Shown: piece after piece, positions 8,491-62,485 of the stretch
How positions within the stretch are numbered: the stretch's first letter is position 1
Layout: each line of letters starts with the position of its first letter
Source of the DNA: Heteronotia binoei
Lineage: Eukaryota
Length of the DNA: 64,000 bases
Reading direction: 5' to 3'
Assembly: GCF_032191835.1 (NCBI RefSeq)
Contig: NC_083237.1
Span: 41,850,001-41,914,000, forward strand
Made by a program: the position numbers and the translations under genes
Notes under the pieces: model-generated
Database searches by the model: none
What the model was told of the DNA's origin: nothing
The model's input: the letters and a program-made list of their open reading frames with translations, nothing else

Positions 8491-9342
8491 GTGACTGAAT
8501 GGATGTCTGCAGCTGCTGCTTCTGGAGACAAGATGGAAGATGTGCTCAGCCAGGCTTCTGATAACAGCTCGGAGGTTGGGAGCGAGTCTGAGGACCAGCT
8601 GCCGGATGGAGATGACAGCATGGCCCAGGCGCCAACTGCTCTGCTGGTGGAGAAGCTCATCTCTACTAATTATAATGTGTGGGGTCTTCAGATGGAACAT
8701 TATCTTAAGCATGAGGGTCTATGGCTGTATGTTGAGGCTCCCCTGGACCCGCCAGCTGCTGGAGACGACGTCAAGGATGAAAAAACCGTTGCAACCATTG
8801 TTTGGAGCATGGCAGATGACCAGTTTGTGCACGTGTCCAGTAAGACTAAGGCTAAGGAAGCGTGGGACAGTCTGAAGGCAGTATATGTGCAAAGCACAGC
8901 CGGGTCTCTAATAGCAATTACCCGTCACTTGTACCGGATGGTCATGAGACTGGAGGAGTCTGTGAGGGTTCATCTAAACACTTTGGCTGAGTGCTTTCAG
9001 CAACTGGAACAGCATGGAAAAACTGTACCGGATGAGGATAAAATGTTCATTATTCTCAGTTTTCTGTCAATGGATTATAACATGCTGATAACTTCGCTCG
9101 AGTCTACTGAAGCAAACAGATTAACCTTGGCTTATGTTATTGGATGGCTGCTGGAAGAAGAATCGAGGCAGAGGGAGTCCAGTTTCTCAGAGACCTGGCA
9201 GTATTCCAGGGCGGGAGAAGCGACTAAGGCCAGCTGTGAGACCGTCCGAGCAGAGAGCACAAAGCAACATGGAGAGGCATCTCAAATTGCTCTGAAAGTA
9301 TGCAGATGTTTCTGCTGTGGATATACAAAGCACCTGAAATGA
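8491..9342 (+). pseudogene. gag: Copia gag (UBN2/Retrotran_gag-like) with degenerate zinc knuckle
   Basis: EKLISTNYNVWGLQMEHYLKHEGLWLYV, TAKEAWDSL-like segment, ILSFLSMDYNML, CFCCGYTKHL knuckle remnant. Confidence 0.85.
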
Positions 9343-9417
9343 TCATACCCAAAGTGGGAGAAGAGAGGCAGACCTGGGGGGCTGCTTCACAACTCTTCAC
9401 ATAACCAGAATGCCACA

Positions 9418-12400
9418 TTGGTGGTCACTGACATGGCTGCTGCATGTGGGGTGTGGATTTTAGTTTCAGGAGCATCCGAGAACTTTGGCCAAGATGAATG
9501 CCTGCTACACAACACACAGTCCTCATTGCTGCAGCATGTGAGTCTATCTGATGGCTGGAACTCTGAGGTGCGGTGTCAGAGAAGTGTCACATTCCCAGCT
9601 CTTCAATACACATTCACAGAAGTGCTATGTGTCCCTGCTCTTGAGAACAATTTGCAGAGCGTGCTTGCTTTGGACAAAGCTGGATTTACTGTTACTTTTG
9701 CCAGCAACTCAATCAAAATAATGAAGGGTGGCAGAGTGTTCACTGTGGGAAGGTTGCAAAACAATGTCTATGTGATAGAAAATTTATCTGTGGGAGCACA
9801 GGTGGTAACTAACACAAGACCTCATGATAATTGTGTTCATTTGCTCCACCGAAGGCTGGGGCATGCCAGTTTTAACACTATCAGCAAAACATTTGCTATA
9901 GTGGGACATGAGGGAGTGAATGAGTGCAAGGTGTTTCTTGTTTGTGAGGTGTGCAAATGTACAAAATCAAAAGCATTCCCGGTTGCCAGGAAAAGTGAAA
10001 GAGTGTCTGTGAATCCATTGGCTTTGGTGCATGCAGATGTAATAGGACCTTACCCCAAAAGCCACTCTAATAAGAGGTTTGCACTAATCCTTGTTGATGA
10101 TTTTTCCAAATTCTCATGGGTGTATGTACTCAAAAAGAAGTCTGATGTGTTCACAATGATAAAATATTGAGCCCGAAAGGTACACAAACAACTGGGTGAA
10201 TTGTGTGCTTTGAAAACTGACATGGGGGGCGAATTTATGTCTTCTGAGTTTAGCGATGGTTGCAAGCACAAGGTATAACTCACAAAGTGGCAAATGTATC
10301 AACGCCACAAGAAAACTGTGGCTGAAAGAAAGGGGGGAGTTTTGCAAGCTATGATGCAGTCTATGCTTACTGATGCTGGTTTATCTATTACTTACTGGGC
10401 TGAAGCATTGAATCCTGCGTGCTACATCAGCAACAGGATTTGGTCTAGGCCCATAGATAACATTTCCTACAAGGTGTTGTACAAGAAAAATCCCAGTTTG
10501 GGACATTTAAGAATTTTTGGCACCAAGGCCTGGGTGAATGTTTCTTTAAACCAGAGGTGAAAAGGGGGAGCTCACTTCAAAAAGCTTCTCTTCCTCGGTT
10601 ATCATACAGGAATGAAAGCATACAAGTTTGCAACCGAACATCAAACACTAAGTTTTAGCAGGTCTGCCAATTTTAATGAAGCCCAGAATTGGCACAGAGT
10701 GTATACTAACAAGTTGCCTCCGCAGGTTGCGCTCCCCATATCAGAGGAAACCACAAGTGTAAAACAGGCGATTGTTCACACTCAGAGGATTGTCGCCTAG
10801 GAGAAACTGAATGAGCAAGAAGAAGAAGAAGATATTGGATTTATATCCCGCCCTCCACTCCGAAGAGTCTCAGAGCGGCTCACAATCTCCTTTACCTTCC
10901 TCCCCCACAACAAACACCCTGTGAGGTGGGTGGGGCTGGAGAGGGCTCTCACAGCAGCTGCCCTTTCAAGGACAACCTCTGCCAAAGCTATGGCTGACCC
11001 AAGGCCATGCTAGCAGGTGCAAGTGGAGGAGTGGGGAATCAAACCCGGTTCTCCCAGATAAGAGTCCGCACACTTAACCACTACACCAAACAGGTGCCAA
11101 GAGGTTCTACCAGAAGTACAAAGGGTATAGCACCAATCAGATTTGGGTTTAATATCACTGCTCTAAATTATGTGTATGTAAAAGAGCCAAAGAGTTATCA
11201 GGAAGTGTTAACTTTGCCTGAGTCAGAGATGCAAGCCTGGCAAACTGCCATGCAGGCTGAACATGATTCTCTTTCTGCAAATGTGGTATTTACTCTGACT
11301 AATTTACCTGCTGACAAAAATGTTATCAGTTGCCGCTGGTTATTCAAACTGAAATCCTTACTGGATAGTGGGATGCAGAGAAAAGCCAGGCTAGTAGCAA
11401 GGAGTTTTTCCCAAGTTGAGGGACTTGACTATGATGAAGTGTTTGCTCCTATGGTCAACTGATATGCTAAAAGCAGCATTGTGCAAGGCCGGGCTTGATA
11501 AAATGCAGGTGCACCATTTTGATTTCACTATTGCTTATTTAAATGCCTGAAGAGATGAAGAGCTCTACATGGAGCAAATTTCGGGGTTTGAAAGCACTAA
11601 CCAAAACCTTGTGTTAAGACTTAACAAAGCTCTGTATGGTTTAAAGCAAAGTCCAAGAGCGTGGAATCAATGTCTGAGTAAAGCTTTAACTGATCTTGGA
11701 TTCATATAGGCAATTGCTGACCCATGTATGTTTAGCAAAACTATCAGGAAAACTAAATGCTATCTGTTTATATTTGTGGATGATTTATGTCTTCTGTTTC
11801 ATGACAACATGCAGCTGCAATGGTTTACACATACAACTCAACACCTGTTTAAGATTAAACATTCGGGCAGCATTCAGCACTACTTGGATGTGGACATTAT
11901 AAGGAACACAAGGATGTTTTGAGTTCAGTTAGAAGAATAAAATAACTAAGCTGCTTGAAGACTATAATATGACAAATGCAAACTGTGTTACCATACCAAT
12001 GACCACGGGCTATAGAAAAGAGCCTGATGACAATGTGTTTGAAAACAAAGCATTGTATCAATCACTAATTGGATCCTTACTATATATATAGCATCTTGCT
12101 CAAGACGAGATATCTATAGTGCGATTCATATGTTGTGTCAGAAGTGTGCATGCTTTTTTTATGAAAGATTGGACTGCAGCAAAAAGGGTATTAAGGTATC
12201 TAAAAGGTACTGCTGCAAGCAAATTAGTGTTAGGCACTACCTCAACACAACAAATAACAGCTTACAGTGATTCAAGCTAGGGAGATAGAAAGGATGGAAG
12301 GTCCACAACAGGCTATGCTGTGTATGTGCATGGGGCTCTTGCGTTGTGGAAATCTTTGAAACAAATACACGTTTCAACCAGTACTTGTGAAGCAGAGTAT

Positions 12401-19254: not shown

Positions 19255-19560
19255 ATTCACTGCCGCAAGAGGTGGTGGCAGCTACAAGCACAACCAACTT
19301 AAAGAGGGGATTGGATAAAAATATGGAGCAGAGGTCCATCAGNNNNNNNNNNNNNNNNNNNNNNNNNNNNNNNNNNNNNNNNNNNNNNNNNNNNNNNNNN
19401 NNNNNNNNNNNNNNNNNNNNNNNNNNNNNNNNNNNNNNNNNNNNNNNNNNNNNNNNNNNNNNNNNNNNNNNNNNNNNNNNNNNNNNNNNNNNNNNNACAG
19501 AGTGTTGGACTGGATGGGCCATCGGCCTGATCCAACATGGCTTCTCTTATGTTCTTATGT
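19255..19560 (+). mobile_element. CR1 3' end spanning an assembly gap
   Basis: SLPQEVVAATSTTNLKRGLDKNMEQRSI matches the CR1 ORF2 end at 32870-33229. Tail gcctgatccaacatggcttctcttatgttcttatg. Confidence 0.85.
19343..19496. other. Assembly gap (154 N)
   Basis: Run of n. Confidence 1.
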
Positions 19561-23354: not shown

Positions 23355-24293
23355 ATGGAAAATGAAACATCTGTGACTGAATTTATTATACTGGGTTTCT
23401 TGACACTCCCAGAGTTGAAACTTCTACTGTTTGTGGCATTTTCTTGCCTGTATTTCCTTACAGTACTTGGCAACATCATCATTATTGCCATAATTACTGT
23501 TGATGGTGCCTTACAGACTCCCATGTATTTCTTCCTAAGGAACTTATCCTTCTTGGAATTATGCTTCACTTCAGTCACCATACCCAACATGCTAGTGAAT
23601 CTGCTCTTGGAAGAAACCAAAATCTCTTTTGTTGGGTGTGCAACACAGCTCTATTTCTTTTTACTGCTTGGTGTCACAGAATGTCTTCTCCTCACTGTCA
23701 TGTCCTATGACCGCTATGTGGCCATCTGCATCCCACTAAGATACACAGCCATCATGAACAAGAGGATTTGCATCCAGTTCTCTGCTGCATGTTGGTTTGT
23801 TGGATTGTTGGTGGCAGCAGGACACACAGCTGTTATCTTCTCTCTTTCCTTTTGTGGACCCAACATTATTAACCATTTCTTCTGTGATATTCAGCCTTTG
23901 CTCATGCTTGTTTGTGGGGACACTTATTGGAATGAAGTCCAAGTCATTGCTGTCGCTGGTGTGGTGCTGATGTTGCCCTTCATTCTTGTTCTCATTTCTT
24001 ACATCCGTATCATCACTACCATTCTGAAGATGAGTTCAGCCAAAAGCAGGAGCAAGGCTTTCTCCACGTGCTCATCTCACCTCATTGTAGTATCCCTGTA
24101 CTATGGCACAGCAGTCTTTATGTACACAAGGCCTAAGGCCAGTTACTCTTTGGATAAAGACAAATGGTTCACTCTGTTATATTGCGTTGTTACTCCACTA
24201 GTGAACCCTATCATATATAGTCTGAGGAACAAGGAGGTGAAGGGAGCACTATGGAAATTGGGTGACAAAATGTTTCAGAGGCTAGAAAGATAA
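23355..24293 (+). CDS. Olfactory receptor, family-10-like, intact 312 aa
   Basis: NET sequon, LQTPMYFFLRNLS, FVGC, MSYDRYVAICIPLRY, NHFFCD, KAFSTCSSHL, PLVNPIIYSLRNKEV. Confidence 0.96.
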   Translation: MENETSVTEFIILGFLTLPELKLLLFVAFSCLYFLTVLGNIIIIAIITVDGALQTPMYFFLRNLSFLELCFTSVTIPNMLVNLLLEETKISFVGCATQLYFFLLLGVTECLLLTVMSYDRYVAICIPLRYTAIMNKRICIQFSAACWFVGLLVAAGHTAVIFSLSFCGPNIINHFFCDIQPLLMLVCGDTYWNEVQVIAVAGVVLMLPFILVLISYIRIITTILKMSSAKSRSKAFSTCSSHLIVVSLYYGTAVFMYTRPKASYSLDKDKWFTLLYCVVTPLVNPIIYSLRNKEVKGALWKLGDKMFQRLER

Positions 24294-25810: not shown

Positions 25811-28800
25811 TAATGAAGACCAACAGATCTGAGGGGAGGCGTTAGATCACGCCCACCAATATGTGACTAGTGATGGGCTAGCAGTGATCCAGCTCAGGGG
25901 GCAAAGCTCTCCTCCACCACTCATGGCTTCTAGGCCACAAAAGAGCTGTAAGGAAATACTATAGCCCCATGTTCCTAACTGACAGGTACCTTTGCCTCAA
26001 GTAGTACGTGTATTGGCATGCGTGACCGAGACCTGGGTGCGTGACGGGGAGACTGTAGCTCTCTCCCAGATGGCGCCCCCAGGATACTCGGTCTTTCACC
26101 AGTCACGGATTAGCGAGCGGGAAGGAGGGGTGGCTCTATTCATATGAGAGGCTTACTCCTTCCGGGCTCTCCCGGCCCTGAAGATTGAGGGCATTGAATG
26201 TGCCGGTCTGGCGTGGGACGTTGGGGAGGGGTTGGCGATCTGGCTGGTGTACCGACCACCTAACGCACCGGCTAGCGCCTTACTGTCCCTACTGGAGGCC
26301 GCAGCAGGCTGGGCATTGGAGTAATCGAGGCTCTTGATCCTCGGTGACTTCAATGTCCATGCCGATGACGCGACCTCCAGTCAGGCAATGGACCTGGTGT
26401 CATCCATGGCGACACTAGGACTCTCCCAAATTGTTACAACACCCACCCACCAGGCGGGGCACATGTTAGACTTGATCTTCACGGCGGGAGTTTTAGTGGA
26501 CGATGTTACTGCTGAAGCAGTGCCATGGTCGGACCACTATGCCCTCAAGGCTCATGTGGATGTCCCACCCCAAGCCCGTTTAGGCGGCGAGCGTATTTTA
26601 GCTTGCCCGCGGAGCCAGATGGATCCGGAACGGTTCCTGATGGCTCTACGGGATCCCTGGCGGTTCCTTGGATGACTTGGTAGAGTCTTGGAATGATAGG
26701 CTCTCCCGGGCCATCGACGAGATCGCACCTAGGCGCCCTCTGCGCCCCTGCCAAAAGTCGGCACCCTGGTATAACCAGGAGTTGCGGCAATTAAAGTGTG
26801 GACTCAGACGGCTAGAGAGGCAATGGCGGCATACTCGAGACGAAGCGATCAGAACATCTTATAGAGAAGTAATGAAGTCCTATGAGATGGCAGTCAAGGC
26901 CACAAAGAAAACATACTTTACGGCTAAGATTGCATCTGCAACTTCGCGCCTGGCACAACTGTTTAGTACAATTCAGACCCTTATAACTCTGCCACAAGGC
27001 AGACCAAATTCTAAAGAATTGGAGATTGGCTGTGAGGCTTTTGCGAACTTTTTTGCAGATAAGGTCGCATCGCTCCGCCACGACTTTCCCGCCATATTGG
27101 AGACAGTATGTGAACCTGAGGCTCCGTGCCGGTCTTCAGAGTGTGTCCTGGATGGTTTCAGTGCTCTCAGTCTGGAGGAAGTTGACAGGATCCTCGCATC
27201 TGCTCGCCCTACAATTTGTAATCTGGACCCCTGCCCCTCCTGGCTTATTAAAGCTTGCCAGAGGGAGCTTAGATATCCTGTATGGGATATCATAAACAGA
27301 TCCCTGATGGAAGGGCATTTTCCAGCACCTCTGAAAGAGGCTGTGGTCCGCCCTCTATTGAAGAAACCAACGTTAGATCCTGCCGAATTGATACACTATC
27401 GACCGGTTTCGAATGTACCCTTTTTGGGTAAACTCATTGAGAGGGCAGTGGCATTGCAGTTGCAGAGCTTTCTGGAGGATGCTTCCGTTCTTGACCCCCA
27501 TCAGTCCGGTTTCCCTCCGGGTCATGGGACGGAGATGGTGCTGGTCACTCTGATGGATGACCTCCAGCGGCATCTGGATCGAGGCGGCTCGGTGGTGCTG
27601 GTGTTGTTGGACCTATCGGCAGCGTTCAATACAGTCGACCACCGGCTGCTGACCCGTTGTCTCGCCGACGTGGGGATTCAGGGGTTGGCCTTACAGTGTT
27701 TCTCCTCGTTCCTTGATGGTCGGGGACAAAGGGTGGCAATTGGGGGTGAGCTGTCCCAGAGGCACACACTGGGGTGCCTCAGGGGGCAGTTCTTTCCCCA
27801 ATGCTGTTTAATATTTACATGCGCCCTCTTGCCCAGATTGCTCGGAGGCATGGGCTGGGTTGTCACCAGTATGTTGATGACACCCAGCTCTATCTACTCA
27901 TGGACGGCCGGCCTGACTGTGTCCCAGAAAACCTGGGCTGGGCATTACAAGCCGTGGCTAGATGGCTCAGGCTGAGTAGGCTGAAACTAAATCCAGCGAA
28001 GACAGAGGTCCTTTGCTTGGGTCGCCGTGGTCTGGGCGGGGGAATTCCCCTTCCAGCCCTTGACGGTGTGCCACTGACAATGGCACACTGGGTCAGGAGC
28101 TTGGGGGTACTACTTGAGCCTGCCTTAACTATGGAGGCCCAGGTAGCAGCCACTGCTAAGTCCGCTTTTTTTCATCTTAGGCGGGCGAGGCAGTTGGCTC
28201 CCTTCCTAGAGCAGGACAATCTAGCAACAGTGATCCATGCAACGGTCACCTCAAGGTTGGATTACTGTAATGCCCTCTACATGGGGCTGCCCCTGTGCCG
28301 AACCCGGAAGTTGCAGCTAGTGCAGAACGCCGCTGCCCGGCTGCTATTAGGGCTCCCTAGACGGGAGCACATTCAGTCGGGCCTCCAGGGACTGCACTGG
28401 CTGCCGATAATATACCGAGTCTGGTACAAGGTGCTGGTTATTACCTTTAAAGCCCTATATGGTCTAGGACCTGCCTATCTTAGGGACCGTCTCTTCCCAT
28501 ATGTTCCCCAGAGAGTACTGTGATCAGGCTCCCAAAATCTGCTCGTAATCCCCAGACCAAAGGAGGCCTGGCTGAAGTCAACCAGAGACAGGGCCTTCTC
28601 CATAACAGCCCCTTGCTGGTGGAACCAGTTATCGGAAGAGGTCAGGGCCCTGTGGGATATTGGACAATTCCGCAGGGCCTGTAAGACAGTCCTCTTCCAG
28701 TTGGCCTATAACTGACCGGCACTAAAACTGAAACTAAAACTATGAAAACATCGAAGGAAGTTATAGATAGCACATTGTGGATTTATGTACTGATTTTAAT

Positions 28801-29596: not shown

Positions 29597-30094
29597 GCGT
29601 GTGAAAAAACTTTTCCTGAAACTGAGATGATGTGTCCACAATGTCATTATTGGCTTCTGCAATATAGCATGCTGAAAAGCCATGATAGGAAGAATCTGTG
29701 AACCAGACACATAACCTGTTCAAAGCCTGAAAACTGCCAATTAATGACCCTGCCAATGGCTTGGTTATAGCACAAAAAAAGGACCTGTCTATTCTGAAAC
29801 AAATTCCTCCACATAATAACTGCTGCAAAATAGGGGGATTAAAAAAAAAAAAGATTTTCTCTTAATATGTCTGACATGGCCCATTGTGGTGCCCAATGCC
29901 TGAAAGAGCAGCACCCTGAAAAATATATCCTGAAACCTAGACTGCCCAATGCATCATTATGACCCAGAAGGCTGCCTTCAGACACAATTGCCATAGGGAC
30001 ATCCTATTGAAATGTTTCAGAAAGGTGAGCAAAATCCATTGGTCCTCCCTGATGCCCTTTGTATCCCTGATATGGTGATGGGGAGTGTTAACTC

Positions 30095-30260
30095 CAGAAG
30101 TAGCCCAAGCAAGACATCAGATCTCAGAAGCTAAGCAGAGCTGACCCTAGAAAGTACTTGGATGGGAAATCTCCACCAGAGGCAGGCAATAGCAAGCCAC
30201 CTCTCTGAATGTCCAAGCCCCTCTGGAGTTGCCAGAAGTCAACTATAACTTCCAGGCATG
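30095..30260 (+). mobile_element. 5S-derived SINE
   Basis: cagatctcagaagctaagcagagctgaccctagaaagtacttggatggga followed by gaggcaggcaatagcaagccacctct. Confidence 0.75.
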
Positions 30261-38850: not shown

Positions 38851-39780
38851 TCAAAATTTTCTGTTAAACAGTTTCTTCAGGCAAACCTTCACCTCTCTGC
38901 TTCTCAAGCTATAAACAATGGGGTTAAGCATTGGTATTAAAATGGTGTAGAACAAAGACAGCCATTTGTTGATATCTATTGTCTCTTTTGATCTGGGACT
39001 CAGATAAACAATAGTTGCTGAACCATAGAATAAAGATACCATAATGAGGTGTGAGGAGCAAGTAGCAAACACTCTCTTACGACCTTCTACTGAAGGCATC
39101 TTCAGAATGGCAGCGATTATCTAAACATAAGAAGCAAGGATAAGGAAAAAAGGGAAGATTAGGATAATTGTGGTAGCTGCAAACATATAAACTTCATTTA
39201 CAAAAATGTCAGCACATACCAACTCCAACACTGGAGGAAGATCACAGTAGAAGTTGTTGATTTCATGAGAGCCACAAAAGGGCAAGATGAACAGTAGGTA
39301 CACCTGCACCACATGCACAGGCATGTTGATAGTCAATGACCCAGTAACAAGTCTTAAACAGAGCTCCTTGTTCATGATAACTTTATAATGTAAAGGGTGA
39401 CATATGGCCACATATCGGTCATAAGCCATTGCCGTCAGAAAGAAACACTCAGTGCTTGCTAGGACAAACAAGAAATACATTTGGAGAGCACAGCCAATAA
39501 AGGAAATGTTCTTTTTTTCTGCCAGAAAATTAACCAGCATCTTTGGGAGGGTGACTGAGGTGTAGCAGATCTCAAGAAATGACAGATTCTTCAGAAAGAA
39601 ATACATTGGACTATCAAGAGCAGTATCAGTCACTGTAATGTAAATGACAAGTCCATTTCCTAATATGATTTCCATGTAGATGAAAAGGAACACCACAAAG
39701 AGCAGAACCTGTAGAATGGGGAATTCAGAGTATCCAAGGAGAATGAAGTCGGACAGTGCAGTATGATTCTCTGTCATCAT
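38851..39780 (-). pseudogene. Olfactory receptor pseudogene with one in-frame premature stop (paralog of 4640-5569)
   Basis: MMTENHTALSDF...LASYV-TAG(39123-39121)-IIAAILKMPSVEG...NPIVYSLRS. Reading frame is preserved across the stop. Confidence 0.93.
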
Positions 39781-39967
39781 TGTTGGTTGTAACTGCTCTA
39801 GAATTGTGAGAACAGGGAACAAATATTAATCAATCCCAAACAACTTTGTTATAATTTCCCAAGATCAGAAATTGTGTCCTGCTAGTTTTTCTACTGATTA
39901 GAGAGGGAGATTTGACCACTTTGAAAACTGTTTTACACATGATTTAGCATAAGCAAGCATACTTTCT

Positions 39968-46025: not shown

Positions 46026-46952
46026 ATGAATAAGACTTCCATCACCCATTTCAATTTTCTTGGATTTCCCAGCTATTTGGAAGTGCAGATTCTCATGTTT
46101 ATTCTGCTTTCTGCTGTCTATGCAGTCACTGTAACTGGTAATTGTCTCATCATCCTTATTACATGGGCTGACATGACCCTTCATACACCTATGTACTTCT
46201 TTCTGAGAATCTTGTCATTTCTGGAGATCTGCTACATCTCTGTCACCCTCCCCAAGATGCTACACGACTTGGTCTCAGAGGACAAGTCCATCTCATTCAG
46301 TGGGTGTGCTGCCCAGATGTATTTTATCTTGTTCTTGGGGACAGTTGAGTGTTTTCTTTTGGCCTCCATGTCTTATGATCGCTGTGTTGCAATATGCCTC
46401 CCTTTGCATTATACAGTGCTAATGTCCAAAGGAGTTTGTATCTATCTGACTTTGGCTTCATGGATGGGTGGCATTCTTATCCCACTGGTGAACACAACCT
46501 GGGCATTTAGTTTGCCCTACTGTGGCTCTAACAAGATCAACCATTTCTTCTGTGACTTCCCACCAGTTCTGAAGCTAGCCTGTGCTGACACATCTCTGAA
46601 TGAGACAGTGATGCTAGTGAGCAGTTTAGTCATCACTCTGATACCTTTCATCTTCATACTGGCATCCTATACCTGCATCCTGAGCACTATATTAAGGATT
46701 CCTTCATCTGAAAGTAGACATAAAGTGTTCTCCACATGTTCTTCACATCTCATCATGGTGACCCTTTTCTACGGCTCGGCCAGCTTTATGTACTTACATC
46801 CCAAATCCAGTTATTCTTTGGAACGAGACAAATTCCTCTCTCTTTTTTACACAGTGGTAACACCAATGCTAAATCCTATCATCTATAGCTTGAGAAACAG
46901 TGAAGTAAAAAAGTCCCTAGCAAGAATGTTTAAAAGGAAAATATTGTCCTAG
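46026..46952 (+). CDS. Olfactory receptor, family-10-like, intact 308 aa
   Basis: NKT sequon, LHTPMYFFL, FSGC, MSYDRCVAIC, NHFFCDFPPVLKLAC, KVFSTCSSHL, PMLNPIIYSLRN. Confidence 0.95.
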   Translation: MNKTSITHFNFLGFPSYLEVQILMFILLSAVYAVTVTGNCLIILITWADMTLHTPMYFFLRILSFLEICYISVTLPKMLHDLVSEDKSISFSGCAAQMYFILFLGTVECFLLASMSYDRCVAICLPLHYTVLMSKGVCIYLTLASWMGGILIPLVNTTWAFSLPYCGSNKINHFFCDFPPVLKLACADTSLNETVMLVSSLVITLIPFIFILASYTCILSTILRIPSSESRHKVFSTCSSHLIMVTLFYGSASFMYLHPKSSYSLERDKFLSLFYTVVTPMLNPIIYSLRNSEVKKSLARMFKRKILS

Positions 46953-47315
46953 GAAATTGTTCTAATATAGGGATCAAATGTGTCAGACAGCAGAATACTG
47001 GTAATTGTATTATATGTAATAGAAATATGTCTGTCAGTCAAATGTACCTTCCTAACTATACTATCTATATCCTAAGCATGGTCAATAAGAACTCATTAGA
47101 TTTATTGAGAACTAATCCACATTTATGAAGTTCTCCAGATGTGGATATGTGCAAGGTTTTCATGTCATGTAATATTATTTTGAGCATACACGTAATCCCT
47201 ATCTTCACAAGGTTCATTCAAAAGGATAAATATAACAATGAAGTAAGCAAAAATAATTCCCATGGATATAGTGGCTTATGCTGTGATTACAAGAATTTTC
47301 ACTGACTGGATAAAT

Positions 47316-53593: not shown

Positions 53594-54538
53594 CTATGAG
53601 GTACAATCAGGCTGACACGTTCCAAACAATTTTCTCAAGGAAACCTTCACTTCTGTGTTTCTCAGGTTATAGATGATGGGATTAAGCATAGGAATCAAAA
53701 TGGTGTAGAACAAGGAAAGCAATTTATTCACAATTAATGTCTCTTTTGACCTGGAACTTACATAGACAATAGTTGCTGACCCATAGAAAAGGGATACCAC
53801 AATAAGGTGTGAAGAACATGTAGCAAACAGTTTCTTCCAACCTTCAACTGAAGGCATCTTCAGAATTACAAAGATTATTTTGACATAAGAAGCAAAGATA
53901 GGACAAAAAGGGAGGACTAGGATTAATGCAGAGGCTGCAGCCATGTAAACTTCACTTGCAAAGGTATCTGCACAGGCCAGCTCCAGCACAGGTGGTATAT
54001 CACAGAAGAAGTTGTTAATTTCACAAGTGCTACAATAGAGCAAGGTAAACAGGAGGTATATCTGTCCTATATAGACAGGCATGTTGATGATCAATGCCCC
54101 TGTAACAAGTCCTAAACAGAGTTCTTTGCACATTATGAGTTTATAATGCAGGGGGTTACATATGGCCACATATCGGTCATAGGCCATGGTGGCCAGAAGG
54201 AAACACTCAGTGCCTCTGAGAAAAAGTACAAAGTAGATCTGAGCAGTCCAGCCAACAAATGAGATTGTCTTGTTTTGTGCCACAAAACTGACCAGTATTT
54301 TTGGAAGGGTGACTGAGGTGTAGAAGATCTCCAGGAAGGCCAGGCTCTTCAAAAAGAAATACATTGGAGTATCAAGGGAAGGATTAGTCACAATAATGTA
54401 AATGATAAGTACATTTCCTGTTATGATGGTCATGTAGATCAAGAGGAACACCACAAACAGCAACACCTGCAGAATTGGAAGTTCAGAATATCCAACAAAA
54501 ATGAAGTCAGATAATGCAGTATGATTCTCTTTTATCAT
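53594..54538 (-). CDS. Olfactory receptor, full-length 314 aa, possibly non-functional (C97W, Arg in TM3, foreign C-terminus)
   Basis: LDTPMYFFL, FVGW in place of FVGC, MAYDRYVAIC, FFCD, FATCSSH, PMLNPIIYNLRN. Confidence 0.85.
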   Translation of the reverse strand: MIKENHTALSDFIFVGYSELPILQVLLFVVFLLIYMTIITGNVLIIYIIVTNPSLDTPMYFFLKSLAFLEIFYTSVTLPKILVSFVAQNKTISFVGWTAQIYFVLFLRGTECFLLATMAYDRYVAICNPLHYKLIMCKELCLGLVTGALIINMPVYIGQIYLLFTLLYCSTCEINNFFCDIPPVLELACADTFASEVYMAAASALILVLPFCPIFASYVKIIFVILKMPSVEGWKKLFATCSSHLIVVSLFYGSATIVYVSSRSKETLIVNKLLSLFYTILIPMLNPIIYNLRNTEVKVSLRKLFGTCQPDCTS

Positions 54539-55407: not shown

Positions 55408-55456
55408 GATATTGTTTTAATATAGGGGTCAAATATGTCAGACTGGTAAGTGTATT

Positions 55457-55870
55457 GCCCCCCCATTCGGAATAAAGAGACATACAACAAGTTGGGATGA
55501 AGGGCCACTTTATTGAATTTATGGCAATGGGGAAAAAACCTGGGGCCAGGCTGAGCCAGGGGTCAACACCAAGACCACCTCCCCAACCTGAAACAGGGCG
55601 AGCCACAGGCCCCGGGATTGAGCCGACCCAACGGCTCAAAACCGGCCGGCCAGGCACCAGATCCAGTCCGCACGAGCTCCACCCTCCCCGTGCCGTACAG
55701 CCTGGGCTGTGGACCACTCCCTAATGACTGGATCACCAGGCTTCCCTGGAGCCAACCTTGCGCCGTACAGCATAGGTTCCCCAGGTAGGCCCTGCACCCC
55801 CAAAGGTGCGTTGCCATGTGCGCTCACCGAAATGCCCCGAATAGAACATGTCCCCAAGGGTAAACCTGCC
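55457..55870 (-). repeat. B2 repeat (414 bp), 3' terminus of the element
   Basis: No difference found versus 56210-56623. Minus-strand AATAAA at 55514-55509. Confidence 0.93.
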
Positions 55871-56039
55871 CGTGACCGCCTATGAACAGCACCGCCAAAA
55901 CCAATTGCCAACACACCTCCAGCAGTGTAAGGTAGGCGAAAACACTTCCAAACCGGCCAATCATTTGGAAGCGAAAAATTCCTACCTGGCCCCGTAATGG
56001 CGACCAGCCTGTGCCTACACTGCATAAAGGGCGGGCGGG

Positions 56040-56206
56040 CCGAACAAACCTAAAACTAACTGCGCCACAAGGGGATGGGCCAGCCAATATAAGGCTGCCC
56101 GCCCCCATGCAGCAGGAGTAAACCATTGTCTCCCATCCTGCAGGGGAGGCAATGGACGGCCCCCAGCCTAAGGCGACCGATGGGTCGCTCGGCTGGGAAG
56201 TGCCGA
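56040..56206 (-). repeat. A2 repeat (167 bp)
   Basis: No difference found versus 62023-62189. Confidence 0.93.
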
Positions 56207-56209
56207 ATT

Positions 56210-56623
56210 GCCCCCCCATTCGGAATAAAGAGACATACAACAAGTTGGGATGAAGGGCCACTTTATTGAATTTATGGCAATGGGGAAAAAACCTGGGGCC
56301 AGGCTGAGCCAGGGGTCAACACCAAGACCACCTCCCCAACCTGAAACAGGGCGAGCCACAGGCCCCGGGATTGAGCCGACCCAACGGCTCAAAACCGGCC
56401 GGCCAGGCACCAGATCCAGTCCGCACGAGCTCCACCCTCCCCGTGCCGTACAGCCTGGGCTGTGGACCACTCCCTAATGACTGGATCACCAGGCTTCCCT
56501 GGAGCCAACCTTGCGCCGTACAGCATAGGTTCCCCAGGTAGGCCCTGCACCCCCAAAGGTGCGTTGCCATGTGCGCTCACCGAAATGCCCCGAATAGAAC
56601 ATGTCCCCAAGGGTAAACCTGCC
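56210..56623 (-). repeat. B1 repeat (414 bp)
   Basis: Copy of 55457-55870, joined to A2 through ATT at 56207-56209. Confidence 0.93.
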
Positions 56624-56645
56624 AAGGACAGCGCCAAGCCTCTGC

Positions 56646-57239
56646 TTAGGCGACTGACCCCCCACAAGACAGGACATGCTCTAACCCATGCCTAAGGTCG
56701 GCCAAAAAGACCTCATTGCCCTTCCTTGATAAGTGGACACCATCAGGCCTGTACAGTTCTGCCCGTTTGGCCCGAATGGATGGATGCGGAACATACTTTC
56801 CCAGACCCGCCTCCATGGCGATAAACAAGGCTCTGTTAGCCTTCATCCTTGCCCGCTCCAAGCCCTCGGGGTCCCAAGCCGCCCGCCACACCCGGCGCGG
56901 CAACATGGCCGACCACAGGACGAGGACGCCAGGCCACCTGCGCTTTATCAAGGTGATGTCATCACGGGCCTGAATTGACAGGGCCTTACCCTTGACTAGG
57001 CCCAGATCATTCTCACCCAAGTGAATCACCAAGATATGTGGGGGCAGGCCCCTCCTCTCCTTAAACAAAAGTGAGAGGAGTCCTGCCCACCTCATTCCAC
57101 GCCGGCCCTGCCACTCAATCGTGGCCTGCTCACTCAGGCCCAACTGAGATCCTCCTGGCATCCGACGTGCCTGATGTGCCGCCCAGAAGACAATACTGTG
57201 GCCGCAAATGAGGATCCTCCTCCTTCCCTGGCCAGCCAC
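56646..57239 (-). CDS. SGNH/GDSL hydrolase (esterase) domain ORF of the Ngaro element, no 5' AUG
   Basis: Block I ILICGHS, block II GMRW, block III HLGENDL, block V PDGVHLS. The track start is GTG. Confidence 0.88.
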   Translation of the reverse strand: MAGQGRRRILICGHSIVFWAAHQARRMPGGSQLGLSEQATIEWQGRRGMRWAGLLSLLFKERRGLPPHILVIHLGENDLGLVKGKALSIQARDDITLIKRRWPGVLVLWSAMLPRRVWRAAWDPEGLERARMKANRALFIAMEAGLGKYVPHPSIRAKRAELYRPDGVHLSRKGNEVFLADLRHGLEHVLSCGGSVA

Positions 57240-57306
57240 AGCACCTAAGAAGAAACGGTAAATATAATAACATTAATAACAACATAACTAATAACGCATT
57301 GCGTGC

Positions 57307-58248
57307 TTACGGCACCAGGGGGCGAATGTAAGACCTGAAGGCCCGGGACCTCCAACGGCCCACCCGGCGAATAGCATCGCCTCCATATCCCATAGCCGCG
57401 GCTGTGGAAGCCGCACCTATGCGGAAGGAGTGGGTACCAAACCTAACCCCACCAAGTCCCAACTTGTTTAACGCCCGGGAAGTGACGGCCCAAAACTGGA
57501 ACCGGGAAAGAGGGGAGCAGTCTTCATGGCAGAATAGCAAGCCGTTAGACTTACCACGCATGTCCAAATATAACTCCAAAGCCCGCACCGGGCATAACTC
57601 TTCCTCCGTACAAGGGCCCAGGGTGATCACACTCCCCCTCTGTTTCTGATCAGTTTTGGACCTGCGGACCCGGATGACAGCCTGTCCCCCAACCAAGCTG
57701 ACGTCATCCAGCATCAGGGCCCTACCGGACTCGTCGTTACGCGAGCAGGCCACCAACTCTGAGACCCGCAATGCCCCAAAAAATGCAGTTAACGCCGCTG
57801 CATGAAAGAGTGCCTGCTCGAAACTGGACCCACAAACTACTGCCCATGTGGAATGAAGACCCCGCAAGATAGATGGGGATATTGGGACCCTGGTGTCAAC
57901 CTGACGTCCCGCCTCGCGGGCCCATCCTTCCAACATTTTGGCAATGCGGAAGTCCTTAGTAAACTCTGGGAACCCCTTGGATCTGCTGGCGAAGGCCAAG
58001 CCCGCCAGTTGGCCCCTGATAGACTTAACGGACAGGCCACGTTCCTTCTGAAACACGCAATATTGTAACAACTGCTCGACTGGGGCCGGCCAACATGCCT
58101 CAAGCCCGGCACCTGCTCTGAACATGGAAAACTGCTTAGCCGCACGGTCATATGCCCTCCTTGTACTGGGTGCAACCGAGAGTTGAATGGCCCGTGTCAC
58201 TTCTTCCCTCCAATTCGCCACAGCTCCGCGGGCATTGGCACGGGACAA
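57307..58248 (-). CDS. Tyrosine recombinase
   Basis: APSTRRAY N-terminal helix and catalytic set FGALRVSEL (R), RSKTDQ (K), HSFRIG (H-x-x-R), GRW (W), SYIR (Y). The track start is TTG. Confidence 0.95.
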   Translation of the reverse strand: MSRANARGAVANWREEVTRAIQLSVAPSTRRAYDRAAKQFSMFRAGAGLEACWPAPVEQLLQYCVFQKERGLSVKSIRGQLAGLAFASRSKGFPEFTKDFRIAKMLEGWAREAGRQVDTRVPISPSILRGLHSTWAVVCGSSFEQALFHAAALTAFFGALRVSELVACSRNDESGRALMLDDVSLVGGQAVIRVRRSKTDQKQRGSVITLGPCTEEELCPVRALELYLDMRGKSNGLLFCHEDCSPLSRFQFWAVTSRALNKLGLGGVRFGTHSFRIGAASTAAAMGYGGDAIRRVGRWRSRAFRSYIRPLVP

Positions 58249-60047
58249 CTGTCGGCCTCCGGGGCGAGTTGGCGGAACCGCTCCATCTGTTGGCGAGACA
58301 GGGCGTCCGCCACTCCGTTATTGGACCCCGGTACATGCCGGGCGGCAAAAAGCACATTCAGTTCAAGACAGCGCAAGGTAAAACGCCTAACCAAACCCAT
58401 AACGGGGGGGGACCTGGACGTAAGGTTATTGACAACATGCACAACAGCCATGTTGTCGCACCAAAAGTGCACCGTATGATTGGCCAAGTCCCTCCCCCAA
58501 ATAAAAACGGCTACAACAATCGGAAAAAACTCCAAAAATGCTAAGTTGCGGATCAAATCGGAGGAGCGCCATTCAGCCGGCCACGGTTCGGCGCACCACT
58601 GGCCCCGAAAATAGACTCCAAATCCGGTGGAGCCTGCAGCATCTGAAACAATCTGCAGTTCGGCCTCTAGCAACATGGCCTCCCGCCAAAAGGATGTCCC
58701 GTTGTAATGGCGGAGGAAAGACTCCCACACCTCCAAATCCTCACGCATACGCCGAGTTACGCGCGTGACATGGTGAGGCGAGCGCAACGCGGTCATGCCG
58801 TCGCAAAATTGCCTCAAAAAGGCTCGGCCGGGAGCAACCACCTTGCATGCAAAGTTCAAATGGCCGACTAGCTGTTGCAGTTCGACCAACGAGACTTTCT
58901 TCCTCCCCTTCAAGGCAGTGACCATTTCCCGCATATTGCGCAGCTTATCCGGGGGCAGTCGCGAAGCCTGCTGGATAGTGTCCAATTCTATACCTAAGAA
59001 AGTTAACACCGTCGCGGGGCCCTCAGTTTTCTCTGGTGCCAGAGGCACGCCCAGTTCCGCCGCAAGCCGCTCAAACGACCGCAACAAGTAAGCACATTGG
59101 CCAGAACCCGCGGGGCCCACAAACAAAAAATCATCAAGATAGTGCGCCGTGTCGCGCAAGCCCGTCCTAAACTGCAGTGCCCACTCCAGGAACGAACTAA
59201 AACGCTCAAAGGCGGAACAAGATACAGAACATCCCATCGGGAGGGCCCTGTCCATATAAAAACTACCCTCAAAACAAAACCCCAACAATTCAAAGTCCTC
59301 AGGGTGCACGGGCAGCAAACGAAAAGCCGACTTGATGTCACATTTGGCGACCTCCGCGCCAAGCCCACAATGCCGCACTATACGCACTGCCCGATCAAAG
59401 GAGGTGTACCTAACCGAGCAAAGCTCGTCGGGGATGGCATCATTAACCGACTGGCCCCTTGGATATGACAAATGATGTATCAGCCGGTACTCACCCCTTG
59501 CCTTCTTAGGTACCACCCCTAACGGGGAGACCCTCAAATTAGGCACTGGTGGCTCGGCGAAGGGGCCCAAAACCCGGCCCTCTGCGCACTCCTTCCGAAT
59601 CTTGTCCCGCACAACATGTTCTAACCCCTTAACAGACCTCAAATTAGAACACATGAAGGGGGTACGAGGACCTTGGTATGGAATCCGGAACCCAAATTCG
59701 AAACCTTCCAACAAATAACGCTTGTCCTCCAAACGTGGGTAATAGCGTAAAAACTCAGTGAGAACCGCTATCCTGATGGGGCTGGGCCCCTTTTCCAGGC
59801 GGCTGATTAGAGCCTCCGGGCCTCTTAAAACCCCCTCTCTGCTTGGACTTACTACATGCCGTGAAAGCATGAGGACCTCCGCACACCGGGCATTCGTGCC
59901 GGTACCTGCAAAACTTCCTAGAGCACGCCCCCTGGGAGGTAAACTCCCAACAGAGCAGCCGGGGTTGAACCGACTGCCCCGCGGGCACGCGGGTGCCGGC
60001 GGGATGACTGGATTTCTGGACGATGTGGCCGCTGTCCGATCTCTCAC
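58197..60047 (-). CDS. pol: Reverse transcriptase + RNase H (pol), first AUG at 59870
   Basis: SPLGVVPKK, YRLIHHLS, KCDIKSAFR, LPMG, HYLDDFL, TFLGIELD, VSDAAG, LAFLEF, CDNMAVV, ADALSR. No stops. Confidence 0.95.
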   Translation of the reverse strand: MRDRTAATSSRNPVIPPAPACPRGSRFNPGCSVGSLPPRGRALGSFAGTGTNARCAEVLMLSRHVVSPSREGVLRGPEALISRLEKGPSPIRIAVLTEFLRYYPRLEDKRYLLEGFEFGFRIPYQGPRTPFMCSNLRSVKGLEHVVRDKIRKECAEGRVLGPFAEPPVPNLRVSPLGVVPKKARGEYRLIHHLSYPRGQSVNDAIPDELCSVRYTSFDRAVRIVRHCGLGAEVAKCDIKSAFRLLPVHPEDFELLGFCFEGSFYMDRALPMGCSVSCSAFERFSSFLEWALQFRTGLRDTAHYLDDFLFVGPAGSGQCAYLLRSFERLAAELGVPLAPEKTEGPATVLTFLGIELDTIQQASRLPPDKLRNMREMVTALKGRKKVSLVELQQLVGHLNFACKVVAPGRAFLRQFCDGMTALRSPHHVTRVTRRMREDLEVWESFLRHYNGTSFWREAMLLEAELQIVSDAAGSTGFGVYFRGQWCAEPWPAEWRSSDLIRNLAFLEFFPIVVAVFIWGRDLANHTVHFWCDNMAVVHVVNNLTSRSPPVMGLVRRFTLRCLELNVLFAARHVPGSNNGVADALSRQQMERFRQLAPEADSCPVPMPAELWRIGGKK

Positions 60048-61245
60048 CTGCGTTAGGCTTAGCAGGAGCCATAAGCTGTAGCCAGAGCTGCTGGCTGATC
60101 TGATCCCAAGGAAGATTGGGATTCACAGCGGCCCTCATCCGGAAGGCCTCGTCATACTGAAGCCAGGCCCCTCCCACAAAATCACTGTAGGCGCGATAAA
60201 TAATATCGCAATACTGAAACAGCGGAGCCGCACGCCAAGGCTGAGCCCTGGCAATCACTCCCGCATAAATTAAGAACCCTGGCAACCAATTGGACCAGGA
60301 CCGATCAATTTTTCTCTTTCTAAGCTTCTCCTTATCCTTTTCGTCCATTTCTTCCTTCGGCTTTTTCTCCAACTCCCTAAACAGTAGACTAAAAACGTCC
60401 ACATACTCGCCTTTCAATATCTTTTCTCTAGTCGCCGCCGTAAGGTGATCGCCTAGCGGTAAAGCCGAATCGCCAAAGGGAATGGCGTGGAAAGGAACTG
60501 AAGCATAGGCAAAAGAGGGGTGGGCGGGAAACCCCAACCCTCCCCACTGTTGAGCATGCCACGGAACTGCAGGTGACCAAGCAGTCTGGGAGCCCCAGGG
60601 AAGGGCGCCACCTCCTAAAGGGTTCGAAACACCCCCAGTAACATTAGGTTGGCCCCCTGCCATGGATGACGACGCAAAGGCAGATACCGTTCCTGGTTGC
60701 CCCTGCATTCCGGGCAGGAGGGATGGCCACATCACCTGAGACTGCTGGCCCGACTGGGCACCCCCTACCGGGCATTGAAAACCCAGCCCTTGTGTTGGCA
60801 GAGTTGAACCCGCCCCAGGTCCTACCACAGGGCCCCACGGGCCCCAAGGCCACACCCCATCACGAGGCTGCAATGGGCACCTACCTTCCTGCTGATGTGG
60901 AACCACCGCCACCTCCTCAGGCTCCTGCCCTTGTTCCTCTTCCGGCGTCACCTGGTCTGACGTCTCACTGCTCCCCGCACCCTGTAGGGCAGATAAACGC
61001 GCCAGAACTTCCTTTTGAAATGCAATGGTCGCCGCCCTGCCGCCGCCCGTTAAACCTGAAACGCGCCGTGAAGGGCCCGCAACACCCTTTTCACCCTCCA
61101 ATGCAGCCAAGCTTTCAAGAATAGCCAGGCGCGTGCTGGCGTCATCCCAATCATCGCTAGGGGGCTCGGCAGGGACTGGCCGTTTTGCAGGCTTTTTTGC
61201 CGGCTGTTTCCCCTTCGAGGGGCCCTGGCCCTTCTTTGGCCCCAT
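59755..61245 (-). CDS. gag: Gag-like ORF1 with C-terminal CCCH/CCHC zinc fingers
   Basis: ATG start, Lys-rich N-terminus, PG-rich linker, WLQYDEAFRMRAA-type core, CWEFTSQGACSRKFCRYRHECPVCGGPHAFTAC. Confidence 0.88.
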   Translation of the reverse strand: MGPKKGQGPSKGKQPAKKPAKRPVPAEPPSDDWDDASTRLAILESLAALEGEKGVAGPSRRVSGLTGGGRAATIAFQKEVLARLSALQGAGSSETSDQVTPEEEQGQEPEEVAVVPHQQEGRCPLQPRDGVWPWGPWGPVVGPGAGSTLPTQGLGFQCPVGGAQSGQQSQVMWPSLLPGMQGQPGTVSAFASSSMAGGQPNVTGGVSNPLGGGALPWGSQTAWSPAVPWHAQQWGGLGFPAHPSFAYASVPFHAIPFGDSALPLGDHLTAATREKILKGEYVDVFSLLFRELEKKPKEEMDEKDKEKLRKRKIDRSWSNWLPGFLIYAGVIARAQPWRAAPLFQYCDIIYRAYSDFVGGAWLQYDEAFRMRAAVNPNLPWDQISQQLWLQLMAPAKPNAGERSDSGHIVQKSSHPAGTRVPAGQSVQPRLLCWEFTSQGACSRKFCRYRHECPVCGGPHAFTACSKSKQRGGFKRPGGSNQPPGKGAQPHQDSGSH

Positions 61246-62022
61246 CTCTCAATTAATTGATGCCCTGCCCCCGCCCAACTGTAGCTGGACGTGGAGCTTT
61301 GAAAACCCCCTCGGATACCGCCGTCTGCACCCACCCCCTGTTCAGCACAGCAGACCAATACAAAGCCCCAGCAACAGTCTTATCTATTCAGTCTGGCAGC
61401 AGCTCTCCAGAGGCTTGAGCTGGTGCCTTTCACTCCTTAACCCTCAGAGTTGGAGGTCCCGAGGACTAACCTGGGACCCTCTGCCCCCAAGCAGACACTC
61501 CACCCCTGAAACACCGTCTCTCCCTACCAATTGAGGGATGAGTATGATGCCCCCAGCCCCTTCAATAACCTGCACCAATAGCGCCCGCTACCAGGTGGGA
61601 GGGGGGAGGGGGGGGCAGGCTGGAGTGCCGATCGATAATAGGCCTAAGAAACTAAGAGGGTGGGGGGGCGTTAGGGCTGCTAAAGAAATCCCCTATGCCA
61701 CCGCCAAGCCGCTACTCCCTGAGGAAATCCACGCCGCCGCTCCGTCCGCCGCCCGAAGCTCCGACGGGCCTCAGCTGGCTCTTCCTCGTTGTCCGACTCC
61801 CCGCGCCGATCAGGGGCCGCGCCCACAAAACAGCCGCAGGCACCGGGGAAAAGCGCGACGCGCCGCTCCGATGCCTTTCGCTGCCCGAGTCCCGACCAGC
61901 TCTGGCTGTCAATCAACGCGACGACGCCGCAGGCCCCCGCCGCCGATCAGGAAGCGCTCTTCGCAACCGTCAGCGAGCCGGGCCCTAACGAAGACACTCA
62001 GCCACGCACAATCGTGGCTGCA

Positions 62023-62189
62023 CCGAACAAACCTAAAACTAACTGCGCCACAAGGGGATGGGCCAGCCAATATAAGGCTGCCCGCCCCCATGCAGCAGGA
62101 GTAAACCATTGTCTCCCATCCTGCAGGGGAGGCAATGGACGGCCCCCAGCCTAAGGCGACCGATGGGTCGCTCGGCTGGGAAGTGCCGA
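62023..62189 (-). repeat. A1 repeat (167 bp), 5' terminus of the element
   Basis: Copy of 56040-56206. Confidence 0.93.
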
Positions 62190-62485
62190 ATTATATGTAA
62201 TAGCAATATGTGCCTTCCTGACTATACTATCTATATCCTAAGCATGGTCAATGAGAACTCATTGGAAAGACTTCTTGAGAACTATTCCATGTTTATCAAG
62301 TTATCCAGGTATGGATTTGTGAGAGGTTTTCATGTCAAATATTATTATTTTGACCATACATGCAATCCCTATTCTCACCAGGTACATTCAGAAGGATAAC
62401 CGTAATAATGAAGTAATCAGAAATATTTTCTATGGATATAGTGCCTTATGCTGTGATGACAAGAATTTTCACTGACTGGATAAAT

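Follow-up and report, generated by a model that had tools for sequence, protein, structure and literature searches.

The minus strand of the window analysed here (the whole stretch of 64,000 nucleotides from Heteronotia binoei, in whose numbering all coordinates are given) carries a complete Ngaro-type tyrosine recombinase (YR) retrotransposon, in which repeats and genes follow the order A1, gag, pol, YR, SGNH and B1-A2-B2. All four open reading frames (ORFs) of the element, gag, pol, YR and SGNH, are intact, and among them we found Pfam matches to RVT_1, Phage_integrase and Lipase_GDSL_2. The split direct repeats stand in the order A1 ... B1 A2 B2 expected for the Ngaro type, both pairs are identical, which indicates a young insertion, and the tyrosine recombinase ORF comes after one for reverse transcriptase and RNase H (RT/RNase H) and a DDE integrase is lacking, as in Ngaro elements. 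We consider it likely that this intact young element uses a single phase-1 donor in gag (60885|60884; the bar marks the splice junction) together with two alternative phase-1 acceptors, one before YR and one before the SGNH esterase. This reading is based on the sites, their phases and conservation, matching public gene models and one intron-less contig. The features concerned are the following:

55454-62192, minus strand: complete Ngaro-type YR retrotransposon, 6739 bp
59755-61245, minus strand: gag ORF, 496 amino acids, its homologs being Gag proteins of squamate Ngaro elements, some of them of the C3H1 zinc-finger type
60885-61245, minus strand: predicted coding exon 1 common to both fusions, comprising Gag residues 1-120 and one further base that opens a Gly codon (361 nt, phase 1)
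60879-60887, minus strand: predicted 5' splice site AAG|GTAGGT, the intron beginning at 60884
58197-60047, minus strand: pol ORF (RT/RNase H), RVT_1 E 2.4e-10, inside both proposed introns
58287-58305, minus strand: predicted YR 3' splice site CCCTGTCTCGCCAACAG|, AG at 58288-58287, within the pol codons ..ADALSRQQ|ME..
57307-58248, minus strand: YR ORF as listed, Phage_integrase
57307-58286, minus strand: predicted YR exon, which with exon 1 would give a 446-amino-acid fusion of the Gag N-terminus to YR (GagN-YR)
57245-57306, minus strand: AT-rich spacer, pyrimidine tract and predicted SGNH 3' splice site TTTCTTCTTAG|, AG at 57246-57245
56646-57272, minus strand: SGNH/GDSL ORF as an open frame, Lipase_GDSL_2
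56646-57244, minus strand: predicted SGNH esterase exon, Lipase_GDSL_2 E 4.4e-5, PDB 4c1b E 3.6e-5

The unspliced RNA of such an element would serve both as genomic RNA and as the message from which the gag ORF is translated. Splicing to AG 58288-58287 would drop 2598 nt and give a 446-amino-acid Gag(1-120)-YR protein, while splicing to AG 57246-57245 would drop 3640 nt and give a 319-amino-acid Gag(1-120)-SGNH esterase (GagN-SGNH). The AUG-less YR and SGNH frames would thereby be translated from the start codon of gag and share an N-terminal module, consisting of a basic tail followed by two leucine-rich helices, and partial use of a moderately strong donor would spare unspliced RNA for Gag and for replication. 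The initial annotation of this stretch had proposed fusions of Gag to SGNH from two alternative donors and had overlooked the conserved phase-1 acceptor before YR; judging from the sequence the gag donor serves this acceptor as well, so that one donor and two acceptors would supply both downstream enzymes.

The sites from which the initial annotation argued were all confirmed in the window. The donor AAG|GTAGGT lies at 60885|60884 on the minus strand, in phase 1. The SGNH frame is closed upstream by a TAA at 57275-57273 and has no ATG before Met27 (counted from the GTG at 57239), and the catalytic Ser is residue 15 of the same count, within a GHS motif. The 60-nt spacer between YR and SGNH (57306-57247) is AT-rich (72% A+T, against 42% for the whole element), close to the maximum of the element, where the top 60-nt window has 73% and only 18 of 6679 sliding windows reach the level of the spacer. 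It ends in TTTCTTCTTAG|GT, with AG at 57246-57245 forming a phase-1 acceptor, and joining exon 1 to the SGNH exon leaves an open frame of 319 amino acids with the junction ..HQQE-G-AVAGQ... In a crude position-weight score the donor ranks second of the 437 GT sites of the element, and together with CAG|GTGAGA it makes up the top two; only the ranks given by this matrix were used, as an indication. The agreement in phase is weak evidence as long as only the window is considered, and it is the comparative data that raise the splice reading above chance.

A protein search with the SGNH ORF returned squamate models of 320-358 amino acids, and altogether we found NCBI models in which a Gag N-terminus is joined to SGNH (320-379 amino acids) in seven squamate species: Eublepharis, Heteronotia, Rhineura, Hemicordylus, Elgaria, Anolis sagrei and Pogona, the last three coming from a profile search and cluster look-up. 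The N-terminus of these models is Gag-like (MPPKKG.G.SKGKQPAK.., an acidic SSSDDE stretch and two ..RL.ALE.. helices), and the models continue ..E/D-G-AV.. into ..RILICGHS.., which is the predicted junction. Five proteins could be mapped exactly onto their loci (L001 and L007 in Eublepharis, L002 in Rhineura, L005 and L008 in Hemicordylus), each with two exons. Exon 1 takes in 394-445 nt of gag up to a phase-1 donor that resembles G|GTRAGT (G|GTAAGT, G|GTGAGT, G|GTACGG or G|GTGAGC), the introns measure 3440-3574 nt across these five loci of three species, and exon 2 begins 14-16 codons before GHS, after a pyrimidine tract and CAG. According to the ORF lists of L001 and L002, the introns contain the remainder of gag, pol and YR. 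The window, with its exon 1 of 361 nt in phase 1 and its intron of 3640 nt, fits these loci; its exon 1 matches that of the mapped models in position and shares 40% identity with that of P0002, a fusion from Eublepharis. Exact exon mapping gave no solution for P0028 (Heteronotia, L006), which has a divergent C-terminus and a gene range of 7.4 kb, or for P0133 on L011, for which the gene range shown is that of other isoforms. Conservation of donor, acceptor and phase in hydrolase-bearing relatives, which the initial annotation had suggested as a check, was thus borne out for the short form, since relatives and public gene models repeat its donor and acceptor as well as the phase and the Gly junction, and the short splice from Gag1-120 to SGNH is strongly supported by these sequence comparisons.

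The homologous gag donor is used in the gene models of seven mapped loci (L001, L002, L005, L007, L008, L010 and L011), which together with the window give eight elements, the loci being from three annotated species. The Gly codon at the donor is GGT in 8/8 of these elements, against 24% in pooled Gly usage, which would occur by chance at a frequency of about 1e-5 given independent elements, and the wobble base at donor position +5 is G in all eight. The donor is located in a poorly conserved linker of Gag, immediately before the WPWG region. A further site that makes a good acceptor-like match, ..CTTTTGCCTATGCTTCAG|TT (AG 60499-60498), lies within gag at 60497-60520 (minus strand); it suits the phase 1 of the conserved donor and is in frame with gag, and its use would remove the Pro/Gly/Trp-rich Gag residues 121-249 in frame.

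The second donor proposed by the initial annotation, which would yield a long Gag1-399-SGNH isoform, fared differently. The site CAG|GTGAGA is present at 60048|60047 (60042-60050, minus strand) in phase 1 and has the best crude score in the element, and the resulting join is open in frame (598 amino acids, junction ..KPNA-G-AVAGQ..). However, GT occurs at the homologous codon in only two of six alignable elements, the window and L011, the other four having GGG (L007), GGC (L010), GGA (L005) and GGC (L008); GTGAGA does no more than encode Gly-Glu-Arg, where the Gly-Asp-Arg relatives have GGG, GGC and GGA. The gag protein search returned no model of about 600 amino acids, or of gag length, with an SGNH domain. 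We therefore rejected 60048|60047 as a conserved donor, since GT is missing in four of the six elements and none of the models found uses the site. It is probably non-functional and is regarded as a chance occurrence, and it seems improbable that the long isoform is made in addition to the short one.

An alternative for the esterase is that it is translated alone and without splicing, from the GTG at 57239 or another non-AUG codon by reinitiation, an internal ribosome entry site or an internal promoter, on a full-length or 3'-coterminal RNA. In the window this GTG stands 14 codons before the catalytic Ser, and in the unspliced contig L012, which also keeps the acceptor ..CTTTCTTTTCCAG|GA, a GTG at the same place and no ATG precede the catalytic Ser. 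Some Xenopus Ngaro consensus sequences, moreover, have all their ORFs overlapping (PMC9210276). The initial annotation had named homologs with an in-frame AUG as a finding that would speak against splicing, and such homologs do exist, but only as a minority: an upstream in-frame Met is present in L001 and L005, whereas the frames of the window, L002, L007, L008 and L012 are free of ATG codons ahead of the catalytic Ser. In P0014 the apparent start ('MAGRS..') was discarded, as its 'M' is a GTG that the gene caller took for a start codon, immediately downstream of a strong acceptor. Lone translation would furthermore have to act on the fourth ORF of a 6.7-kb RNA. The modelled fusions retain the Val codon in question inside the protein (..G-A-V..), every element has a pyrimidine tract and a correctly phased AG upstream, and the conservation of a donor in a poorly conserved region of gag would be left unexplained. 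L001, L002, L005, L007, L008, L011 and L012 have homologous acceptors, in which a pyrimidine tract leads to YAG|G or YAG|A 14-16 codons before GHS. We consider translation of the esterase on its own unlikely.

The evidence for the YR acceptor is of the same kind. Joining exon 1 to the YR exon gives 446 amino acids with no internal stop and the junction ..HQQE-D-GAVPPTRP.., over an intron of 2598 nt. The window acceptor ..CTGTCTCGCCAACAG|ATGGAGCG (58305-58279) is nearly identical to the annotated acceptor CTCTGTCTCGCCAGCAG|ATGGAGCG of the Eublepharis locus L010, whose gene has both an unspliced, single-exon gag isoform (P0057) and a spliced GagN-YR isoform (P0070), the latter running from the donor GAGG|GTAAGT to the acceptor ..CTGTCTCGCCAGCAG|ATGGAGCG (..TCTCGCCAGCAG|ATGGAGCG). 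CAG is found at the same pol codon in eight elements (window, L001, L002, L005, L008, L010, L011 and L012), and in each of them the donor G plus the YR exon opens a YR frame of 322-332 codons. In the Rhineura isoform P0055, which like P0200 has no entry among the gene products, a piece of YR stands between the Gag and SGNH parts, and its placement on L002 by tblastn puts the acceptor (..CACGGAACCAG|AT) within the pol codons ..SRNQ|ME... A search with the YR of the window returned NCBI models of 449-493 amino acids, in which a Gag N-terminus passes through ..E|DGA(L/V)SP.. into YR, and such GagN-YR models occur in six squamates (Eublepharis, Anolis sagrei, Pogona, Elgaria, Hemicordylus and Tiliqua). 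Four pairs of GagN-YR and SGNH models have a common exon 1: P0070/P0015, P0101/P0195, P0133/P0205 and P0124/P0031.

YR could otherwise be produced by programmed -1 frameshifting from pol, the spliced models then being annotation artefacts or non-productive by-products. A passage of PMC13003380 quotes Poulter and Butler (2015) as calling programmed frameshifting probable for YR expression, and in the window the YR frame does lie at -1 relative to pol, with an overlap of 52 nt as listed and 121 nt as an open frame; as listed, YR lacks an ATG upstream of codon 42. Nevertheless, no canonical slippery heptamer (X XXY YYZ) was found in the 121-nt overlap, and for this reason we set a -1 shift aside. 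Furthermore, pol (58197-60125, minus strand) is in the +1 frame relative to gag (overlap 293 nt), so that a Gag-Pol-YR chain would need two different shifts, and the sole XXXYYYZ heptamer of the gag/pol overlap, GGGTTTT at 59833, would lead into the -1 frame and not into pol. Frameshifting also leaves aside the CAG acceptor at the same pol codon in eight elements, annotated as such by NCBI in Eublepharis and Hemicordylus, the Rhineura isoform P0055, which indicates the same acceptor on a related locus, and the intron-less contig L009, whose second segment starts exactly there. Taken together, these data leave frameshifting with little probability as the source of YR. As a separate observation, NCBI models of amphibian YR proteins from Pseudophryne, Ambystoma, Ascaphus, Xenopus, Rana and Mixophyes (P0158, P0162, P0177, P0182, P0145 and P0147) have N-terminal extensions of 100-170 residues that are unrelated to YR; the YR elements of amphibians may have a spliced leader of a similar kind.

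The Logan contig L009 (SRR6291285, 1677 nt) contains one ORF of 394 amino acids that runs from a Gag-like N-terminus to SGNH with no intron. Its post-Gag segment starts exactly at ATGGAGCG, the start of the YR-acceptor exon; at this point it carries the pol motif MERFRLLAP in another frame, and the sequence upstream is not pol. The contig looks as would a spliced RNA in which exon 1 is followed by a mini-exon from YR and then by the SGNH exon. Mini-exons of this kind, which extend from the YR acceptor to a donor inside YR and are followed by the SGNH exon, are present in the Hemicordylus isoforms X2 and X3 (L011:5925-6070), in Rhineura P0055 and in L009 (963-1030). The window lacks the internal YR donor of the Rhineura type, having GGC in place of GGT at ..SIRG|Q...

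Several points weigh against the single-donor, two-acceptor reading. The NCBI models may rest on RNA-seq, protein chaining or ab initio prediction, and some of the modelled loci have degenerated, gag being broken in L008 and L011. As the eight elements are kin, the codon statistics are optimistic in treating them as independent. The upstream Met codons of L001 and L005 belong here, as does the crude acceptor score, which places the SGNH acceptor of the window only 6th of 428 AG sites and the annotated acceptors of other loci between 1st and 17th; with such ranks we considered this score too unspecific to serve as a criterion. L009 may represent a retrocopy in the genome, or derive from a deletion, instead of being an mRNA, although a retrocopy would imply splicing all the same, and the assembly-tag function discussed below is one that we infer only. 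That the whole pattern is an artefact, with predictors chaining ORFs over chance GT and AG sites and the error being propagated between species, is very improbable, for although all fusion proteins except one come from a single pipeline, propagation would need in-phase consensus sites at homologous positions in elements that are 40-68% identical, the conserved GGT and +5 G speak against chance, the alternative mini-exon donors of the L011 isoforms X2 and X3 would, from general knowledge of the pipeline, be typical of transcript evidence, and the intron-less L009 is independent of NCBI.

Given GagN-SGNH fusions, the resemblance to the ORF1 protein (ORF1p) of L2-type long interspersed nuclear elements (LINEs) that the initial annotation had drawn is upheld by homology and by structure prediction. 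The only PDB sequence match of the esterase is 4c1b, the esterase of ZfL2-1 ORF1p (E 3.6e-5), its match to PF13472 (E 4.4e-5) being below the curated cut-off, and the SGNH blocks GHS, HLGENDLG and DGVHLS are present (block I Ser, block III Asn, block V Asp-x-x-His). An AlphaFold (AF2) model of the natural fusion P0006 has a predicted layout similar to that of ORF1p, with a disordered basic N-terminus, helices at 38-56 and 80-93 of moderate prediction confidence, a disordered linker and an SGNH fold with a predicted local distance difference test (pLDDT) score mostly of 85-95; the best fold matches are PAF-acetylhydrolase-type enzymes, TesA and 4c1b, of which 4c1b is highest in identity. In esterase-type ORF1p the esterase follows a predicted coiled coil and a poorly conserved linker; that of ZfL2-1 is an active enzyme with affinity for liposomes and acidic phospholipids (PMC3905857). 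The analogy holds because of the esterase homology to 4c1b and the similar layout.

The comparison with CR1/L2 ORF1p (ZfL2-1; PDB 4c1a and 4c1b) extends to a homologous SGNH esterase in the window and, in the modelled fusion, to an N-terminal helical region and a disordered linker before the esterase; Pfam matched no RNA-binding domain. However, CR1/L2 ORF1p is one contiguous first ORF, whereas here the Gag N-terminus would be spliced to the fourth ORF of an element that has in addition a full Gag with zinc fingers. By analogy with the LINE protein, the fusion may form a coiled coil and bind lipids. As the predicted esterase is the fourth ORF of a YR element and not the first ORF of a LINE, it falls outside the esterase-type ORF1p class, and GagN-SGNH may by analogy work like such a protein without being a member. 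The common module is probably an assembly or localisation tag into Gag/RNA particles, since full-length Gag carries the same module; if so, GagN-SGNH would correspond in function to ORF1p of L2/CR1 LINEs, a coiled-coil-esterase protein with affinity for acidic membranes.

In the literature on DIRS and Ngaro elements covered here we found no mention of element splicing or of Gag joined to a hydrolase or to YR; an earlier mention is possible, as the 2015 review and Goodwin and Poulter (2004) lay outside this scope. Hydrolase-bearing Ngaro elements of amphibians and fish were reportedly treated by Goodwin and Poulter in 2004. Such elements (Repbase DIRS-53_XT and DIRS-54_XT) resemble that of the window in their split direct repeats and in their gag-RT/RNase H-YR order with an SGNH ORF after YR (PMC9210276). 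The Ngaro hydrolase ORF is thus known, with no proven function (PMC9210276); in the papers covered its function and expression are called unknown and splicing goes unmentioned, whereas in the window a predicted donor and acceptor pair would explain its expression. The host lineage is squamate-like here, in contrast to the amphibian hosts of the known hydrolase-bearing Ngaro elements.

Retroviruses have a major 5' splice site near gag and acceptors before env and accessory genes, and gypsy-type elements splice env. The programme proposed here shares with retroviral subgenomic splicing one upstream donor, alternative downstream acceptors and an unspliced RNA acting as genome and gag message, and the conserved donor and acceptors of the Ngaro element are in compatible phase. 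Unlike in retroviral splicing, the window donor is set 361 nt into the coding sequence of gag, and every spliced product would therefore be an in-frame fusion to the Gag N-terminus; the downstream genes encode a tyrosine recombinase and an esterase, and the element is not of the long terminal repeat (LTR) type. The Gag-Pol frameshift fusions of retroviruses and LTR elements would follow a common logic, namely that enzymes are tethered to a Gag-derived module for co-assembly, but the tether proposed here would be made by splicing and comprise only the first 120 Gag residues, and its function is inferred.

The splicing programme would give a concrete answer to how AUG-less ORFs of DIRS and Ngaro elements that overlap or follow pol are expressed, and both the proteins to be expected from it and their junction peptides (HQQEGAVAGQ and HQQEDGAVPP) are defined. 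It would also link the Ngaro esterase mechanistically to the lipid-binding esterase of L2/CR1 ORF1p. With regard to annotation, dozens of reptile RefSeq entries named 'uncharacterized protein LOC...' or 'integrase/recombinase xerD homolog' would, if it is true, be spliced transposon products and not host genes. A more tentative extension, which we hold with less than even confidence, is that squamate Ngaro elements, and possibly YR elements more widely, use single-donor, two-acceptor splicing to place an N-terminal Gag module of 120-150 residues on both YR and an L2-ORF1p-like esterase, as a tag that loads them into Gag particles. If this were true, it would replace the frameshift model of YR expression, and a Gag-bearing element would have rebuilt a LINE-type membrane-binding ORF1p through splicing.

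The remaining features of the element are its split direct repeats:

62023-62192, minus strand: A1, 170 nt, 100% identical to A2
56207-56623, minus strand: B1, 417 nt, AATAAA at 56267-56262, 100% identical to B2
56040-56209, minus strand: A2, 100% identical to A1
55454-55870, minus strand: B2, AATAAA at 55514-55509, 100% identical to B1

The 169 nt between A2 and B2 (55871-56039, minus strand) are single-copy in the element, whereas the canonical A1..B1-A2-B2 scheme predicts no spacer. The Phage_integrase match to YR (E 5.5e-6, 26.7 bits) is slightly below the cut-off of 27.1, and PF00589 is present in YR homologs. A methyltransferase domain, which marks DIRS and PAT elements, had no Pfam match in the four ORFs.

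The insertion site is an olfactory-receptor gene cluster, with five ORFs matching 7tm_4 in the window: 4640-5569 (minus), 23355-24293 (plus), 39121-39822 (minus, truncated), 46026-46952 (plus) and 53594-54538 (minus). Just beyond the 5' end of the element, 62204-62399 is 84% identical to 47039-47229, 15 kb away, and the two are probably copies of an older interspersed repeat that was the target of the Ngaro insertion. Remnants of a Copia-type LTR retrotransposon (Retrotran_gag_2, gag_pre-integrs and Pol_BBD) occupy 8491-10170 (plus strand), and a run of N at 19343-19496 is either an assembly gap or masked sequence. A second RT-bearing element, with RVT_1 divided between two ORFs, and beside it a fragment that shares 37% identity with the RNase H end of pol from the Ngaro element, lie at 26668-28523 (plus strand) and 29677-30098 (minus strand).

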